From NCBI RefSeq assembly GCF_032062105.1, contig NW_026941528.1:1-64000 (forward strand): a DNA stretch of 64,000 bases, given 5' to 3'. Position numbers and translations under genes: made by a program. This document shows positions 43,201 to 52,000 of the stretch, piece after piece. The DNA comes from Saccostrea cucullata (Eukaryota). Under the pieces are notes generated by a model. It was not told where the DNA came from, did not search any database, and worked only from the letters and a program-made list of their open reading frames with translations. Every line of letters starts with the position of its first letter. Positions within the stretch are counted from its first letter, which is position 1.

Positions 43201-45984
43201 AAACCCGGTATATAGGTGATGAAGATGTTAATAATAAAAATTGGTTGTTACATTATCATATCAAACTTTAACATGATCAGCCTCCACTTAATTATCAGTC
43301 AATCTGAATCATGTAACTTACATTAACCTCATTAAAGCTTTGATCCTGAATAAGGTTTAATGTATATACTTGTCTTAAATTTTAGAATAAATCAAGTGAA
43401 TTACACGCATCATAGTGCTCATTATTCAGTTTTTGTTTAACGTTAATCTAAAAAGAACAAATCTAAAAATCGATATTTTATTCTTGGCAGTGTTGAATCA
43501 AACTATAGTATGCTATACTTTAGTGGATTGATACTCCAAAAATATATAAATGGTTAATGACTACTCCAAAATATATAAATGATAAGAGATTCTTAGAAAA
43601 AGCTTACAAGTCAGTTAACTTTGTCAAACCAGTAAATATGCTGCTCTTGATTGTAGTCATTCTGTTCTGGTTCAAATATCTGAAAAGAAGTACAAAGTAA
43701 AAATCGAAAGCAGGTGATTCCTAAAAAAAAGAAAGGTTCCTTTTTTTCTTGGAGAAATTATCACGTAAATAACTCCATCTAGATCCACACAGCCAATACA
43801 TGGTTTTACACGTGATTTGAACTGGGTTTGGGAAGTTTTTGTTTTGCAGTTTACGAGGGCTTGTCAATTAACAGTGTCCTCGATGCTTGGAAAGAAGCAA
43901 AACAAAAAAGAAAAAACTCTCCAATGATAAAGTATCATTGATTTAACTTAATATTTTCTTTTATTTAAAAAACATTTCGATACATTTTTCATTCAATTTC
44001 TGATCGTTTTTTTCTTCAACATGTACTATGTAAATGGTGTTTTTTTCGTGTTTGGAAAATGAAAAAAATAAAAGGCGAAAAATCTGGCAAATATTGTTAA
44101 TGTGAAAAAAATACTTTCTGTTTATAACAAAAAATCCTTTACTCTTCAGGGCGTCCGGCTTTGGACGCTGTCATCAAGAAATTTAATGTAGCAAATTACT
44201 GATTCTGGTCCCTTCCTCTCATTAACCTTTCGATTTTTGCAAAAACAATTGCTTTCTATAATCTTCCAGAAATAAAATTTCCTCCTGAACACGAATTTGA
44301 ACAACAAAACCACTAATATTAAAGAAAGTTGCATATAAAATTGTCTTTGTGCTCCTGCAATTCTTTGCGCTTCTCAGACCATTGCTGTTTTTGTCAAGTA
44401 CATCTTATTGTAATTTTTTTACCGAGGTTTTTAAGCAAAAGATTCAAGTTTTATTATGTGTTTGAATTTCAATCAAACATGGATAACTACAATTACTTAT
44501 ATTTAAAAATAATTGTTTAGATATTCTCACACATTGTCGTTTTTACTCATATCTCAAAACAAACGGTGACCATTGAGTACTAAGCTTTTTTACTGTTAAA
44601 CATTTCTTTAAAACAGTGTGAACTACTCCTCAAATGATGTATATCAAATAAACTGTGTGTCTTAAAGTCAATCATCAGTGATTATTCGTTGAAATAACTT
44701 TATTTGGTAGTAACCAATATTTGCCCCCAAATCAAACTTTGAAATATTTTCATTATGTTTTTAAACAGGGGGATATATGCTGACTTCAAAGCACTGAATA
44801 TTGTTATAAGCAATGACGTTATATATTTGAAATGACGTCATATGACGTAAAATAAAAATTTCCTTGATTTCTGCAGAAAAATGTATATGTTACGTCGATA
44901 TTTTGAGTAAAAGTCATCGAGCACAGGTCTGATCAGGATCGATATTTTGATATCATGTGTAGAATGATAATATCAATCCTGAACAAACTTGCGCTCTACA
45001 AATTTTAAAGCAAAAATTGTTGAAATTTTGTCCATTTTTTCCTCTTTCTGAAAAATGATATAAAATCGGACTAGTTTTCGACGTTATCAATAAACTACTT
45101 TGAAACTTTGATATGTTCTGTTATTGATATTGATATTCACCTGCCCATTTGTCTATGAAACAAACAATGGTTCCCGTAAATTTCCTCACATTTCAGTGAA
45201 TATTTCTTTGAGACTTAACGAGTTTTACAACAGCTTAAATGAAGCGTTTAATTTCACTCTAGTTTACTTATTCTAAACCATTCATTTTTAATTCAGTGTC
45301 TCGAATAGCCTTTGTTTTGCAGCTTCTCACAATGAAACTATCTGATGAGAAGTGGTCACATAAATTATTATTAACTTATTTTAGATTCAATTATGCGAAA
45401 AGGTCAAGCTTAATGTTATATAAAATCTGTATTGTATGACACACAGTTCAGGACATTATTTATTGAACAACCCTCATATAGTTTGTACAATTGATATCCT
45501 AAAAACACACAAGGAAATTAAAAGTTTCTATTAATTTGTCTACTTATTGAAATAATAGAAAACAACAAGAGATATTATAGTTTGGAGGGAATCATATTCC
45601 AAGATATATATCTAAAAAAACAAACTTACAGTCTTTCTAAGTTCGTCAATGCACTCATTGCATTGTCCTCTATTGTGGTTATTCTGTTTTGATGAAGTAC
45701 CCTGAAAAAAATGTGCAAAGGGAATATCAAGTGCAATTATTTATCACCTTAATATTATAAAAATTTTACATTTTCCTTATATATATATATATATATATAT
45801 TCATGGTTGATTAGCTTTTACTAGCGAATATAGTGCAAAGTAACCAAAATGCACATGTGACCAATTTTCATAATTTTTTTGCCACATAGTCAAAAAAATT
45901 CCCATATTATGTTCTCATGCGTTTTTTTCCTTTCAGTAAATTTATATATATATATATGTTCTCATGCGTTTTTTTTCCTTTCTG

Positions 45985-46022
<38 letters not shown>

Positions 46023-49000
46023 ATTTACATCCTTAAATTAATTTATGTAAAACATCTGACACGGCAGACCCATGCTAGCAATTAAGTTTCTTAATCGCAA
46101 AATTTCTTATCCGTTAGATTAAAGCAATTCTCGAAGATCTTTCTGTAAATTGGTATGATTTATATTCTCGGCCGTCGGATGCTAAGATATGCGCGCGGGT
46201 TCTCACGCCTTTCACCATTCCCTCACAGAACCTTGTCAGTGAACGCGCAAACAAAAATTCTGCTGTAATTTTAATTGTTGATCTCTTCATATCTATTCAA
46301 TTGGGATAGAAAGGTATGGATTTTAATTTTTGATGTTTATTTTCCTCGGCATGTTGGATCCCTATGTTCTTAAATTTTTTAATGTGGAACAGAACTAGCT
46401 TTTTTGGTGAAAGCATATATCTCAAAACAATGGTATCTATTCTGATTGCGGGATCTTCTCATGTAAATAGATTACAATCGTATATCCGAGAACATTGTGA
46501 ATATGCTAACTTCAATTTATCCGCAACGGCGATTAATTATTTTGGAATAAGTGGTGGGAAATTATCATGTTCCGCTCATATAAATATGTTAGAAAGGAAA
46601 ATCGCTGATCTACGTCCAGGTGTACTCATTTTACATATAGGAGGAAATGATGTTGACAATGTAACAGCAGATGAATCGTTTGTGAGGGAATTAAGCCTGC
46701 GCCTTTTATGCATCGCAGAAACTTTCACATCACGCTACAATATTGCACATGTGAAAATTTGTCAGCTAATGCCTCGTTTTAGGACTCGACTTTTAGACAC
46801 AACATCGTATAATGAACTTGTGATCAAATTCAACAGAGAATTGAAATGTCTGCTGGTACAGAAAACGAGTGTGCAATATTGGAAGCTTAAAAATATTAAA
46901 CACTCTAAATTTCCGATATTTTGTGATGGCGTTCACTTTAACGAAGAACAGGGGATGATAATATACTATAGGAATCTACGTGGGGCAATATTGCACTCCT
47001 TGAAGGCTATCCAAAAGTGATGGCATGTTACCTTCACCATATTCATGTTATGAGATAAGTTTCATTTTAATTTTAATTTTTGTAGTAATTATGCATTCAA
47101 GATACATGTACTTGAATTTTGAATATCGATGTCATACCAAACAATATTATGGTGTATAGAGTGTAGAACATTTTACGATAGCTGCTAGTCATTTGATGCA
47201 CATGGCATCGTTTTAGTGATCTGTCACTATATATGCACTGTGATATGTCACAGTAGAAACGGCTTCTGCTCATTTTGATGCACATGGCATCTTGATGTTT
47301 GCGATATGTCGCTATGAGCTGTAATATGTACAGCTGAGCAGTTGCTTTTATGTTATGGCTAGCAGCTTATATGTGTGAAGTGTCGCTACACTCTGATGTA
47401 TGGTACACCTGAGAAAGGGGGTTACACAAAGTCATTCTGTTTCAACTTTAACAACTCCGAGCAGGGAATTAGCAACAGAAAGGAATGTAAATTTTCCCAT
47501 TCTTGTCAGCTCTGCGAGGGAGAGCACAGTAGAAAGGTCTGTCCCACGTCCCTCAAATCAAGCGCAAATGCTAAAGGAAGACATAGAGTTAGCAGTAATC
47601 ATGGTCCGACAGAATTTACAAAGTCCACATCCAAATCATCAAAATAAAAATTTTGAAATTGTTACCCCAGTTAACCCTGATAGGTTACATGTATGGCTAT
47701 TAAATTACGATATACCTGATAGGGAGTTTCTGGTCTTAGGTTTTAGAGAAGGATTTAAAATACCTTTTCAGGGTAAAAGACAATGCAGACTTAGCGACAA
47801 TTTAAAATCCGCTAAGCAACATTTAGACATTCTTCAAGAAAAAATAAACAAAGAATTAGCCTCTGGTCGAGCTGCTGGTCCGTTTCAAGAACCACCATTT
47901 ACTAACTTTCAAAGTTCGCCCTTAGGCTTAGTGCCCAAAAAGCAACCTGGCGAATTCCGGGTTATCCATCATTTGTCATACCCAGAAGGTCAGTCAATTA
48001 ATGACGGAATATCTCAAGAATTCTGTTCCATCAAGTATCAGACAATTGACGACGCGGTTAAAATTCTTAAAAAGTATGGCAAGGGGGCTTTATTTTCGAA
48101 GACTGATATTGAGAATGCATTTAAAATCATTCCTGTTCATCCTTCAGATCACGAATTACTAGGCTTCACGATAGGAAGTTATTATTTTTTTTTTTATAAA
48201 ACTTTACCCATGGGTCTTAGTTATTCCTGTAATCTCTTTGAGAAATTTAGCTCATCACTTCACTGGGTTATGGACTATCATTACAATGCTTCCTGTGTAC
48301 ATGTTTTAGATGATTTTCTTTTCATTGGTCCAGCCAACACAAATCAGTGTTTAAATTCGCTGGAAAACTTTTTGAACCTGTGCAAAGATATAGGAGTTCC
48401 CATTAAATCTGAGAAAACAGTATATCCCACAACAACAATTACATTTTTAGGTTTAGAATTTGATTCAGAAAAAATGGAATTAAGATTGCCAGATTACAAG
48501 CTTCTCAAATTGCAAGAAACACTAAATAGTTTCAAAAGGAAGAAAAAAGCTTAACTACGCGACTTACAGTCTCTTATTGGCTTGTTAAACTTTGCATGTT
48601 CTGTTGTATTACCTGGCCGCACATTTCTCAGACGACTGATAGATCTCACCAAAGGTTTAAGATTACCGCACTTTAAGAAGTACTTGAATAAGGAAGCTAG
48701 GGCTGACCTTGAGGCCTGGTCAATTTTCATTAACCATTTTAATGGCAGATCCTTAATTTTAGAAGATAAATGGATTACTTCTGGAATATTATCCCTCTAT
48801 ACAGATGCAAGTGACCTTGGTTTTGGGGGTACTTTTCAAATGAACTGGTTTTGTGGGAAATGACCTGAAAAGTGGCGCCAGCTACACATTACAGTCAGGG
48901 AACTATTGCCTATTATACTGGCCTTAGATTTGTGGGGCCCCGACCTGCAAAATTCCTGTGTTAATTTTTATTCTGATAACATAGCTGTAGTGTACATTAT

Positions 49001-52000
49001 TAACAAACAAACTTCTACTGATCCAACTATTATGAAATTAATGCGGCGTTTTGTCGTCAAGACAATGCAGTTTAACATTTTATTTAAGGCAAGTCATGTC
49101 CCTGGTGTACTTAACGTTGCTGCAGATAAACTTTCTCGCTTACAGGTACAAGAATTCAAGGAGGGGTTCCCATCTATGAATCCAATGCCGACACCAATAT
49201 CTCCAACAATGCTCAACCTTTAAAGAACGTAGCAGACTTCATTTTGCAGAGTTCACTTGCTAAAGCTTCTAGGTCATCATACGATAGAGCTTTTACATGT
49301 TATAAGTCCTTCATGTTCAACCAATATCCAAACGTCCCCATCTTACCACCATCATCTCAACATGTCGCACTTTTTGTAGCCTTTTGTTTTCAATCCAACA
49401 TGGCGACGTCGACCTTGAAAAGTTATCTATCAGCTCTAGGATATATATTTAAATTAAAGGGCTATCAAGACGTAACACAGCTTTTTGTAATTCGCAAAAT
49501 GCTACAAGGGTATGAAAAGTTAAAACCAGGTACCAGGGATACGAGGCTGCCTATAACACCGTCTATTCTAAGAAATTTAGTTGACTCGCTTGATCATTTA
49601 GGTATCTCATTTTACCAGCGCAGCATGCTAAAATCAATGTATTTGTTGGCCTTCCATGCCTTCTTAAGAGTGGGGGAAATAACTATCACATCTCGACATC
49701 ACAGAGGTAATGTTTTGCTACTGGAAAATGTTGAGCTTGTTCGAGACGAATCAAACACACTAGAAGGCCTAGAAATAAGACCTGCTTCTTTCAAGCACAG
49801 TTCTGGCCGACATATTCCCACCTTGTTTCTACAGGCTAGTAATTCCGATGAAGGGCTCTGTCCAGTGCAAGCACTATTGTCATTTATTACACTAAGGGGT
49901 CAAGTCATGGGTCCCCTTTTTTCTTACCCTGATGGTCATGGAATCCAAAGGCAACAATTTACAAACTTTCTACAAATGTCTTTAAAGTGGTCGGGTCTCG
50001 ACTCTAAACTCTATAAAACTCATAGTTTTCGAATTGGTGCGGCAACGTCAGCAGCCGAAATGGGTATTTCAGATTAAAAGATTAAACAGATGGGACGATG
50101 GCATTCCGACGCATACAAGAAATACATACGCATACCTGTTTTGAAAATCTAAATATTTTCTGCAGTAAGTATAATCATGGGGACAGGGGCCTCTGATTAT
50201 GCACTAAATATCAACACATACTACGATCAGCTGGTTTTTGGACATAGCGAATATAAGTTTCCAGATTTATATTTAATTTCCCTTTATAGCATGGACTGTT
50301 TTGAATTTTAAACCTAGGTCATGGGGACATGGGCCTCTGACTTAACCTTATAAATATAGCATGGAATGTTTTGATTTTCAAACTTGAGTCATGGGGACAG
50401 GGTCCTCTGACTTAACCTTACAAATAAAGGATGGACTGTTTTGATTTTTCGAACTTACACGTAAGTCATGGGGACAAGGGCCTCTGACTTAACCTAATGG
50501 AGGTACAACTGCGTTCATTTTTCTTCGACATTAAGTCACGGGGACATGGGCCTCTGACTTATTCGCCTGGTTGTGTTTATATAATGTATAATTTGTTTTT
50601 TTATTCCGGTTGGCTGTAATAGTGATGTTAGAAACTTTGATGAAATATGACAGAGGATCGTGAACTTAATTATAACGTATTATGGACACTGCTGGTTAAT
50701 GGAGCTTGAACTAGATCCTTCTATCACTTATAAAGGAGTATCTTGACCATCTTTGAAGAAACTATGTGGTATTTATGTTTGTGCATTAATATTAACAATT
50801 CATTAGAAGACAATAGTTTAAGGATGGGGTTTATTGCGTTTATGTAAACACAATAATGTGGCGAATTTTTATACCCCACCTTTGATATCTATTGAAACAA
50901 AATTGATTATATTTTCAATTGTTCAATTTTTCTGATTCTGCATTATATGTTTATATGCATGATATTTTGTGTTTTTTCATACAGTCATTTATAATGTATA
51001 TAAATGACATTTTTCAATTCACTTAATCTTAATTTTGTTTCTTCATATCAAACAGAGTTAAACTATTGTCAGTGGGTTTACATAAATATTTAATTTACAT
51101 CCTTAAATTAATTTATGTAAAACATCTGACACGGCAGACCCATGCTAGCAATTAAGTTTCTTAATCGCAAAATTTCTTATCCGTTAGATTAAAGCAATTC
51201 TCGAAGATCTTTCTGTAAATTGGTATGATTTATATTCTCGGCCGTCGGATGCTAAGATATGCGCGCGGGTTCTCACGCCTTTCACCATTCCCTCACAGAA
51301 CCTTGTCAGTGAACGCGCAAACAAAAATTCTGCTGTAATTTTAATTGCCCTCCGTCCCGCCCCAACACCATCTGTAATTATTGCCGTGTCAGCATAGTTA
51401 TCTTTGATTGGTTTTGTATGATACATATTCTTTTAGAATAGTTTTTTATGTTTATGTTTTAATTTGCTAAAAATATGTACGATTGTGGTGTTTGCGAATT
51501 TTTATACCCCACCTTTGATATCTATTGAAACAAAATTGATTATATTTTCAATTGTTCAATTTTTCTGATTCTGCATTATATGTTTATATGCATGATATTT
51601 TGTGTTTTTTCATACAGTCATTTATAATGTAAAAAAATGGCATTTTTCAATTCACTTAATCTTAATTTTGTTTCTTCATATCAAACAGAGTTAAACTATT
51701 GTCACTGGGTTTACATAAATATATATATATATATATATATATATCACCTAAATACTTCTTACTTTCCTTTAAATGTCAACACAGGTATATCAAATTTAAA
51801 CATGTTCAACCTTAACTTAAGAGGGCCGTTCAGAAATTACGCGGACTAGTTGCACAGAAAAAAATATTTGACAATATAAACGGGCAAAATGTCACACATA
51901 ATATAAAAGAATTTTTCCTTATATGGTCTTCAAACTTTAATATTAAAATGTTGTAAATTGTTATCAATTTTGAGTGATTTTTTCAGGGCATATCAGTAAG

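Follow-up and report, generated by a model that had tools for sequence, protein, structure and literature searches.

We analysed a 64,000-nucleotide (nt) window of the oyster Saccostrea cucullata genome (NCBI RefSeq assembly GCF_032062105.1, contig NW_026941528.1, positions 1–64,000 of the forward strand), in which a 5.7-kb retrotransposon carries an array of five small hairpins directly behind its tyrosine recombinase gene (Table 1). An initial annotation, made from the sequence alone, had called the element an RT-YR retroelement; it is of the Ngaro type. Reverse transcriptase (RT) and tyrosine recombinase genes lie together in one element, its split direct repeats are ordered A1 ... B1 A2 B2, and it has an SGNH-type hydrolase frame and no methyltransferase family in the five frames scanned. 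The RT frame matches RVT_1, the recombinase frame is 98% identical to an S. cucullata protein (its relatives carry Phage_integrase) and a sister copy gives a weak match to PF00589.

The array comprises five 30-nt units on the + strand (window 50171–50561) with start-to-start spacings of 144, 70, 77 and 70 nt. It lies between the recombinase stop and repeat B1, in the opening 410 nt of the 3′ untranslated part: unit 1 starts 19 nt past the natural stop, and the array ends 300 nt before the start of B1 and 1,164 nt before the end of the element. In each unit a lower stem of 7 bp is followed by a single bulged nucleotide (C in unit 5, U in the others), an upper GGGG/CCUC stem of 4 bp that includes one G·U pair, and a 7-nt loop of the form ACANGGG, with folding energies of −11.8 to −16.6 kcal/mol and z-scores of −1.5 to −3.3 (n = 5). 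The loop ends in GGG, and the 5′ half plus loop is ~90% purine. Differences among units preserve pairing: three lower-stem pairs are changed between unit 1 and unit 4, all of them compensated, and the sole such changes in units 2 and 3 are A-to-G substitutions that give G·U pairs. The initial annotation had described these positions and spacings, the fold and the pairing-preserving substitutions, and all of them are confirmed. It had also recorded an odd loop, ACAGGGU, in the third copy; this is present, yet private to the window copy, as neither the sister copies nor any RNA read share it.

Tandem Repeats Finder reports a hairpin-plus-spacer repeat with a period of 70 nt and 2.9 copies, in agreement with the earlier observation of relatedness among spacers 2, 3 and the end of spacer 1, with spacer 4 unrelated. 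Units 2–4 with their spacers are thus tandem duplicates, from which units 1 and 5 stand apart. The C bulge of unit 5 recurs in the last unit of the S. cucullata arrays examined (groups A–I).

Table 1. Features of the Ngaro-type element, in coordinates of the window
Feature	Position	Strand	Description
Terminal repeat A1	46009–46277	+	99% identical to A2
SGNH/GDSL hydrolase reading frame	46364–47020	+	At the 5′ end of the element
Short frame with CCHC zinc knuckle	47363–47644	+	Knuckle at 47504; gag remnant in the window copy
Reverse transcriptase reading frame	47397–48554	+	Pfam RVT_1, E = 5.9e-15
Tyrosine recombinase reading frame	49130–50152	+	Natural stop 50150–50152; earlier in-frame stop 50075–50077
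Hairpin unit 1	50171–50200	+	Lower stem differs at three compensated pairs; positionally conserved first unit adjoining the recombinase stop
Hairpin-plus-spacer tandem repeat	50285–50495	+	Tandem Repeats Finder
Hairpin unit 2	50315–50344	+	Tandem-array unit; one lower-stem A-U pair changed to G·U
Hairpin unit 3	50385–50414	+	Tandem-array unit; final loop letter (50403) private to the window copy
Hairpin unit 4	50462–50491	+	Tandem-array unit, canonical form
Hairpin unit 5	50532–50561	+	Last unit; bulge C, not U
Repeat B1	50861–51092	+	Upstream partner of B2
Inverted repeat over the B1/A2 junction, 21 nt	51067–51131	unassigned	Conserved in family I (L068:6330–6395)
Repeat A2	51079–51347	+	99% identical to A1
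Repeat B2	51494–51725	+	98% identical to B1; marks the element end, inside an (AT)n tract

The initial proposal of a selected RNA structure turned on the array not being confined to this copy, and at least 30 loci of the S. cucullata genome carry such arrays. The array DNA itself matches ~30 places in the 1.17-Gb genome, at identities from 100% down to 69%. A covariance model (R1) built from the five window units and covering the 34-nt hairpin only found at least 149 units in some 35 loci among the top 150 scored of about 95,000 candidates; no host-gene match was seen among those 150, and every locus checked among the scored matches is a Ngaro array. Wherever both were detected, the array lies 100–500 nt downstream of the recombinase match and on the same strand. 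Representative loci hold 3 to 8 units, and the number over the arrays examined ranges from 3 to 9; the first unit beside the stop and the last, C-bulged unit are positionally conserved, and the middle units vary in number. The set compared here stops short of the more distant S. cucullata Ngaro families (recombinase 32–47% identical). In group D (L063:4510–5710; G000 C59, also C6421 and C7369), ~1.2 kb of other DNA parts the first hairpin from the rest of the array; the three loci score identically and may be assembly duplicates.

Comparison among copies bore out the earlier statement that the repeats are far better conserved than the spacers. Relative to family I (L068), a sister family, the window is 81% identical in the hairpins and 49% in the array spacers, with 56% in the rest of the untranslated region (UTR), 65% in the recombinase coding sequence and 70% in B1. 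Groups C (95% in hairpins versus 86% in array spacers) and E (92% versus 80%) differ in the same direction. The hairpin advantage is mostly lost in two dead groups, the truncated copies of group F (87% versus 83%) and the stop-riddled copy of group G (86% versus 81%), a pattern consistent with selection during propagation and not at the insertion site.

Pairing was assessed in a core-anchored, ungapped alignment of 38 distinct units from ~10 families and 5 species, with lower-stem columns set by distance and not fitted. Standard pairs fill 92.6% of cells, against 78.5% after shuffling of partners. Both-sided changes occur at 8 of the 11 pairs and in 72 cells, compared with 23 in the shuffles, and none of 500 shuffles matched the observed value. 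Sliding the partner by 1–3 columns lowers the paired share to 31–58%, and a model-fitted alignment gives the same covariation picture. The choice of units brought in little bias: these UTRs contain 48 matches to the core, and in 44 of them 5 or more of the 7 lower pairs form. The lower helix takes at least 15 different sequences among the units; fixed letters are found in the bulge, in the two pairs directly below it, in the upper helix and in the loop. Where the upper helix does change, its two halves change together (GGAG with CUUC, GAGG with CCUC).

Non-canonical pairs indicate which strand folds. Neutral decay of a DNA palindrome would yield equal numbers of G·U pairs and A·C mismatches; the counts are 35 versus 8 within the S. 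cucullata genome and 25 versus 9 across species and, besides this cross-species excess, one G·U pair is constant in 32 of the 38 units. Because of the G·U excess, the mismatches that it leaves in the antisense strand and the conserved centre with free, compensated arms, we take sense-strand RNA to be the folding molecule. The initial annotation had suggested that selection acts on an RNA structure and had looked to covariation across homologues to decide the matter. Its suggestion is upheld by covariation in at least 10 families and 5 bivalve species, with the paired share and the shuffles given above, by the G·U excess and by hairpins that outlast their spacers.

Related elements in other species were taken from a recombinase protein search, after which their loci were examined. 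Family 1 of Saccostrea echinata (recombinase 60% identical) has one unit 5 nt past the gene, followed by an array with a 47-nt period, and S. echinata families 2 and 3 (39% and 40%) share the upper part of the hairpin on entirely different lower stems. Pinctada imbricata (45%) has six units, four of them in a tandem run with a 40-nt period, and an upper stem of GGAG/CUUC, a double change from GGGG/CCUC. In Argopecten irradians (45%) there are three units of the same shape with the loop UAAKUGG, and in Mercenaria mercenaria (39%) the units contain a 22-nt core identical to that of the oyster. Placement is equally regular: the first unit lies ~5–45 nt from the recombinase stop in every examined family with the canonical hairpin except S. 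echinata family 3, in which the array begins ~270 nt past the stop. We searched 75 kb at nine loci on both strands and without filters (five from S. cucullata, the others from S. echinata family 1, Pinctada, Argopecten and Mercenaria). At E ≤ 0.1 the model gave 50 hits, every one of them in sense orientation and directly behind the recombinase gene, with none elsewhere. Array periods differ by lineage (70–77, 83, 47 and 40 nt), and period and spacers differ even between close relatives such as S. cucullata family I and S. echinata family 1, so that arrays expand and turn over around a hairpin that persists. The recombinase tree is unresolved at depth and does not show whether the hairpin type tracks elements or hosts.

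The model search gave no hit in Pecten, Mya or the soft coral Dendronephthya. In all three, the motif that recurs most often in the 3′ UTR is again a hairpin, with an apical loop rich in G and an internal loop that is small and asymmetric. A metagenome scan with a 17-base core returned 37 contigs, mostly with single matches, and in a model scan of 12 of these contigs 9 matched little beyond the searched core, as expected by chance. Full hairpins were found in three metagenome contigs only (L097, L103 and L105), and in two of them they lie directly past the recombinase C-terminus. These two, L097 (JYMV01023727.1) and L105 (MOXH01004357.1), are filed as metagenomes and carry a Ngaro-type recombinase C-terminus and then the hairpins; they are probably invertebrate DNA.

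The array is present in transcripts. In the raw reads of three oligo-dT RNA-seq runs, coverage extends over the whole element, with the array at a low, even depth similar to that of the genes; reads continue past the array, and one contig from an RNA library spans 49145–50875. We found no pile-up of read ends, ~70-nt species or processing joints in the array, for all of which poly(A)-selected libraries are a poor test. In six reads, drawn from the three runs, 50286 is joined directly to 50465 and 178 nt are skipped, most likely because some expressed copies have a shorter array and not through processing. Where RNA and window differ, A>G is the commonest change (16–17 places per run over window 45950–51800), which may be copy variation or editing.

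The window copy itself is defective in two ways. The earlier in-frame stop of the recombinase frame is private to it, with all RNA reads in the three runs differing there, and it lacks ~1.13 kb, comprising most of gag, that is found in the sister copy L061 (L061:1768–2899) and in expressed copies. The missing segment in L061 includes two gag-like frames, and its absence explains why the window copy has almost no gag. Loose RNA read ends at 47414 and 47415, on either side of the window junction (47414/47415), indicate that expressed copies carry the segment. The gap is a deletion and not a lost intron, since its boundaries show a 2-nt microhomology and no GT..AG.

The element is set in an (AT)n tract or microsatellite, with A/T letters at each of its ends (46000–46030 and 51715–51744). 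The inverted repeat over the B1/A2 junction is likely to be the DNA site of the recombinase, a candidate that is unrelated in sequence to the hairpin units and lies 500–900 bp away from them; together with the AT-rich ends, it would fit recombination between a circle junction and an AT-rich target. The interval from the SGNH frame to gag (window 47095–47335) contains a second cluster of small perfect hairpins, several with AYAUG-type loops, including a 5-bp stem with the loop ACAUG that occurs twice (47192 and 47274). These loop letters overlap those of the 3′ hairpin loop (ACAUGGG), and one binder might read both arrays.

An Rfam scan of 49800–51500 at E ≤ 5 gave two chance hits outside the array and no iron-responsive element, epsilon or other family. 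The initial annotation had remarked that the shape loosely recalls an iron-responsive element without its loop. In both, a pyrimidine bulges from the 5′ strand below a short upper helix that ends in a small loop, and the transferrin receptor likewise has five units in its 3′ UTR. The array, however, has a U bulge in 4 of its 5 units, an upper helix of 4 and not 5 bp, and ACANGGG in place of CAGUGN; with this misfit of loop and upper-stem length and no Rfam hit, it is not an iron-responsive element.

Other known signals are closer in possible role. Packaging signals of retroviruses and long terminal repeat elements, such as the psi stem-loops of human immunodeficiency virus 1 (GGAG or GGUG loops, bound by nucleocapsid zinc knuckles), are also short stem-loops with exposed guanines, several to an RNA, and the oyster element likewise combines an exposed G-rich loop with a zinc-knuckle Gag. 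Those signals occupy the 5′ leader and have no tandem array and no conserved bulge, whereas the oyster array is in the 3′ UTR. The constitutive transport element of Mason–Pfizer monkey virus and the direct repeats and stability element of Rous sarcoma virus share the position and the repeated structured units, and act on unspliced RNA with a long 3′ part, but show no sequence or Rfam similarity to the oyster hairpin, which is much smaller. The 3′ stem-loops of stringent long interspersed nuclear elements (LINEs; eel UnaL2) and the hepadnavirus epsilon, both read by RT, are further cases of a conserved hairpin in template RNA, and such a hairpin could recruit RT here; epsilon is in addition a bulged hairpin that doubles as a packaging signal. 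LINE stem-loops sit at the extreme 3′ end, whereas the oyster hairpins are ~1.1 kb from the element end, and epsilon has a 6-nt bulge that templates a primer, compared with 1 nt in the oyster hairpin. The array thus resembles packaging, export, LINE and epsilon signals in possible role and has the defining features of none.

Within tyrosine-recombinase retrotransposons, Poulter and Goodwin reportedly noted a hairpin at the 3′ end of the DIRS-1 mRNA as a possible primer. That hairpin, the sole one so far discussed for such elements, is also in the 3′ part of the RNA, but it is single and terminal, was proposed for self-priming and comes from another superfamily, with no array, bulge or comparative support described. 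A study of DIRS-1 gives the primer of reverse transcription as unknown and cites only this single terminal hairpin as a candidate (PMC7192593). The initial annotation had known of no such array for Ngaro or DIRS elements, and our search of the literature on Ngaro with stem-loop or hairpin gave nothing relevant. We found no published description; the open-access papers centred on Ngaro that we consulted are silent on hairpins, stem-loops, tandem repeats and UTR structure, and the founding Ngaro papers could hold a passing mention.

The transcribed 3′ part of these elements therefore contains a repeated, covarying, strand-specific hairpin that is selected in propagating lineages and serves the element, not the host locus. 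It very probably represents a previously undescribed control signal in the RNA of the element. Our preferred reading, to which we lean with modest conviction, is that the units are cis-acting 3′ RNA hairpins bound by protein, probably the element's own CCHC Gag or RT, that mark the RNA for assembly and reverse transcription and that its propagation would require. The selected shape has any lower helix of 6–7 bp, a pyrimidine bulged out on the 5′ side, a G-rich upper helix of 4 bp that nearly always includes one G·U pair, and the ACANGGG loop. Because the letters below are paired but free and those of the bulge, upper helix and loop are fixed, we infer that the hairpin is read from its top by a protein, which would recognise the bulge, the wobble-bearing upper helix and the G-rich loop. 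With 3 to 9 units, expanded separately by each lineage, one RNA would offer several binding sites and thereby avidity. The zinc-knuckle Gag or the RT of the element itself would be the most likely partner, and the element does encode a CCHC knuckle as a candidate. A variant in which RT and zinc-knuckle Gag bind their own RNA at an epsilon-like start signal, the redundant copies serving as an internal origin of reverse transcription, seems to us unlikely; if true, it would couple packaging to the start of cDNA synthesis.

Several points weigh against a role in packaging by an element-encoded protein, or against the evidence on which it builds. The data do not distinguish an element-encoded binder from a host one, and the near-identity of the 22-nt core where the proteins are ~40% identical suits a conserved host factor no less well than a rapidly evolving protein of the element. 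In retroviruses the packaging signals belong to the 5′ leader and not to the 3′ part. The units share descent, so that cell counts overstate the number of independent events, and the look-alikes in Pecten, Mya and the soft coral, which are looser, number 2–5 units each and have weak folding z-scores, are only suggestive. Finally, the RNA libraries appear to be unstranded (mate orientations are of similar depth) and are of low depth, and carry-over of genomic DNA is possible.

The partner could instead be a conserved host protein that exports the unspliced RNA, protects its 1.6-kb 3′ UTR from nonsense-mediated decay or controls translation. We regard this as a possibility worth keeping in view, though it falls well short of probable. 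It would account for a core that is nearly identical beside recombinases of 39–60% identity, in hosts from oysters to a venerid clam, for the constant placement of the first unit beside the stop codon (S. echinata family 3 excepted), and for a site between the last gene and the 3′ repeats, which is where retroviral export elements lie. Parallels exist in type D retroviruses (the constitutive transport element), in Rous sarcoma virus (the direct repeats and the stability element) and in the transferrin receptor message, with its five iron-responsive elements. However, the letters differ in related hosts (the UAAKUGG loop of Argopecten and the other forms in Pecten and Mya), no known host-factor motif or Rfam family matches, and the top 150 scored of about 95,000 genomic candidates revealed no host gene. 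An origin as a functionless tandem repeat around a chance palindrome, for which one could cite the frequency of tandem repeats in the untranslated parts of retroelements and a copy number that varies from 3 to 9, is extremely improbable given a hairpin that is kept across species while spacers, period and copy number turn over, and given compensatory changes and strand-asymmetric wobble pairs.

It is very unlikely that the units act as DNA, either as folded sites in single-stranded cDNA, in the manner of integron attC sites, which are recombined as single-strand hairpins, or as duplex accessory sites for the recombinase comparable to the arm sites of lambda attP. That the element encodes a tyrosine recombinase speaks for such a role, as do a lower stem that keeps structure and not sequence and a bulged base that is conserved, as in attC. 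DIRS-1 is also reported to amplify via single-stranded cDNA (PMC7192593). Yet the wobble pairs of the oyster hairpin favour the sense strand: the first cDNA strand is antisense, in which the G·U pairs become A·C mismatches and the 4-bp upper helix is broken. In a duplex bound by a dimer the arms should be conserved and the centre free, whereas in these units the centre is conserved and the arms vary, and the likely recombination site is the different inverted repeat at the B1/A2 junction. We give just as little credence to the G-rich 5′ halves being polypurine-like primers of the second strand, or to the units being cut out as small RNAs. An interrupted stem of 11 bp is too short for a Dicer or Drosha substrate, and neither a pile-up of read ends nor a ~70-nt species was seen, although poly(A) libraries test this poorly. 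The strong purine bias of the 5′ half and loop would suit a primer, and the primers of these retrotransposons are unknown (PMC7192593), but a polypurine tract needs no pairing partner and the 3′ half nevertheless covaries. Other candidates were tried and rejected. Some lower stems read like TGAGTCA, an AP-1 site, which is ruled out by the unrelated lower stems of other families that still pair; homology for strand transfer between the 5′ arm and the end of repeat B is a loose likeness in the window and absent in family I; and a stop-codon readthrough signal is ruled out, as there is no downstream open frame and the arrays start at variable distances from the stop.

Tyrosine-recombinase retrotransposons (DIRS, Ngaro, PAT and VIPER) are the least understood order of retroelements, and how their RNA is chosen, packaged or primed and how their cDNA starts are unknown (PMC7192593). 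A small, repeated and deeply conserved hairpin offers a handle on RNA choice, packaging and priming, as it can serve as bait for proteins and be mutated in binding and probing assays. It also provides a signature of sequence and structure by which Ngaro elements, and those derivatives of them that lack genes, can be annotated in the genomes of molluscs. Because its bulge, wobble pair and loop are fixed and its stem covaries freely, it is a clean natural case of an RNA signal of the kind read by proteins.

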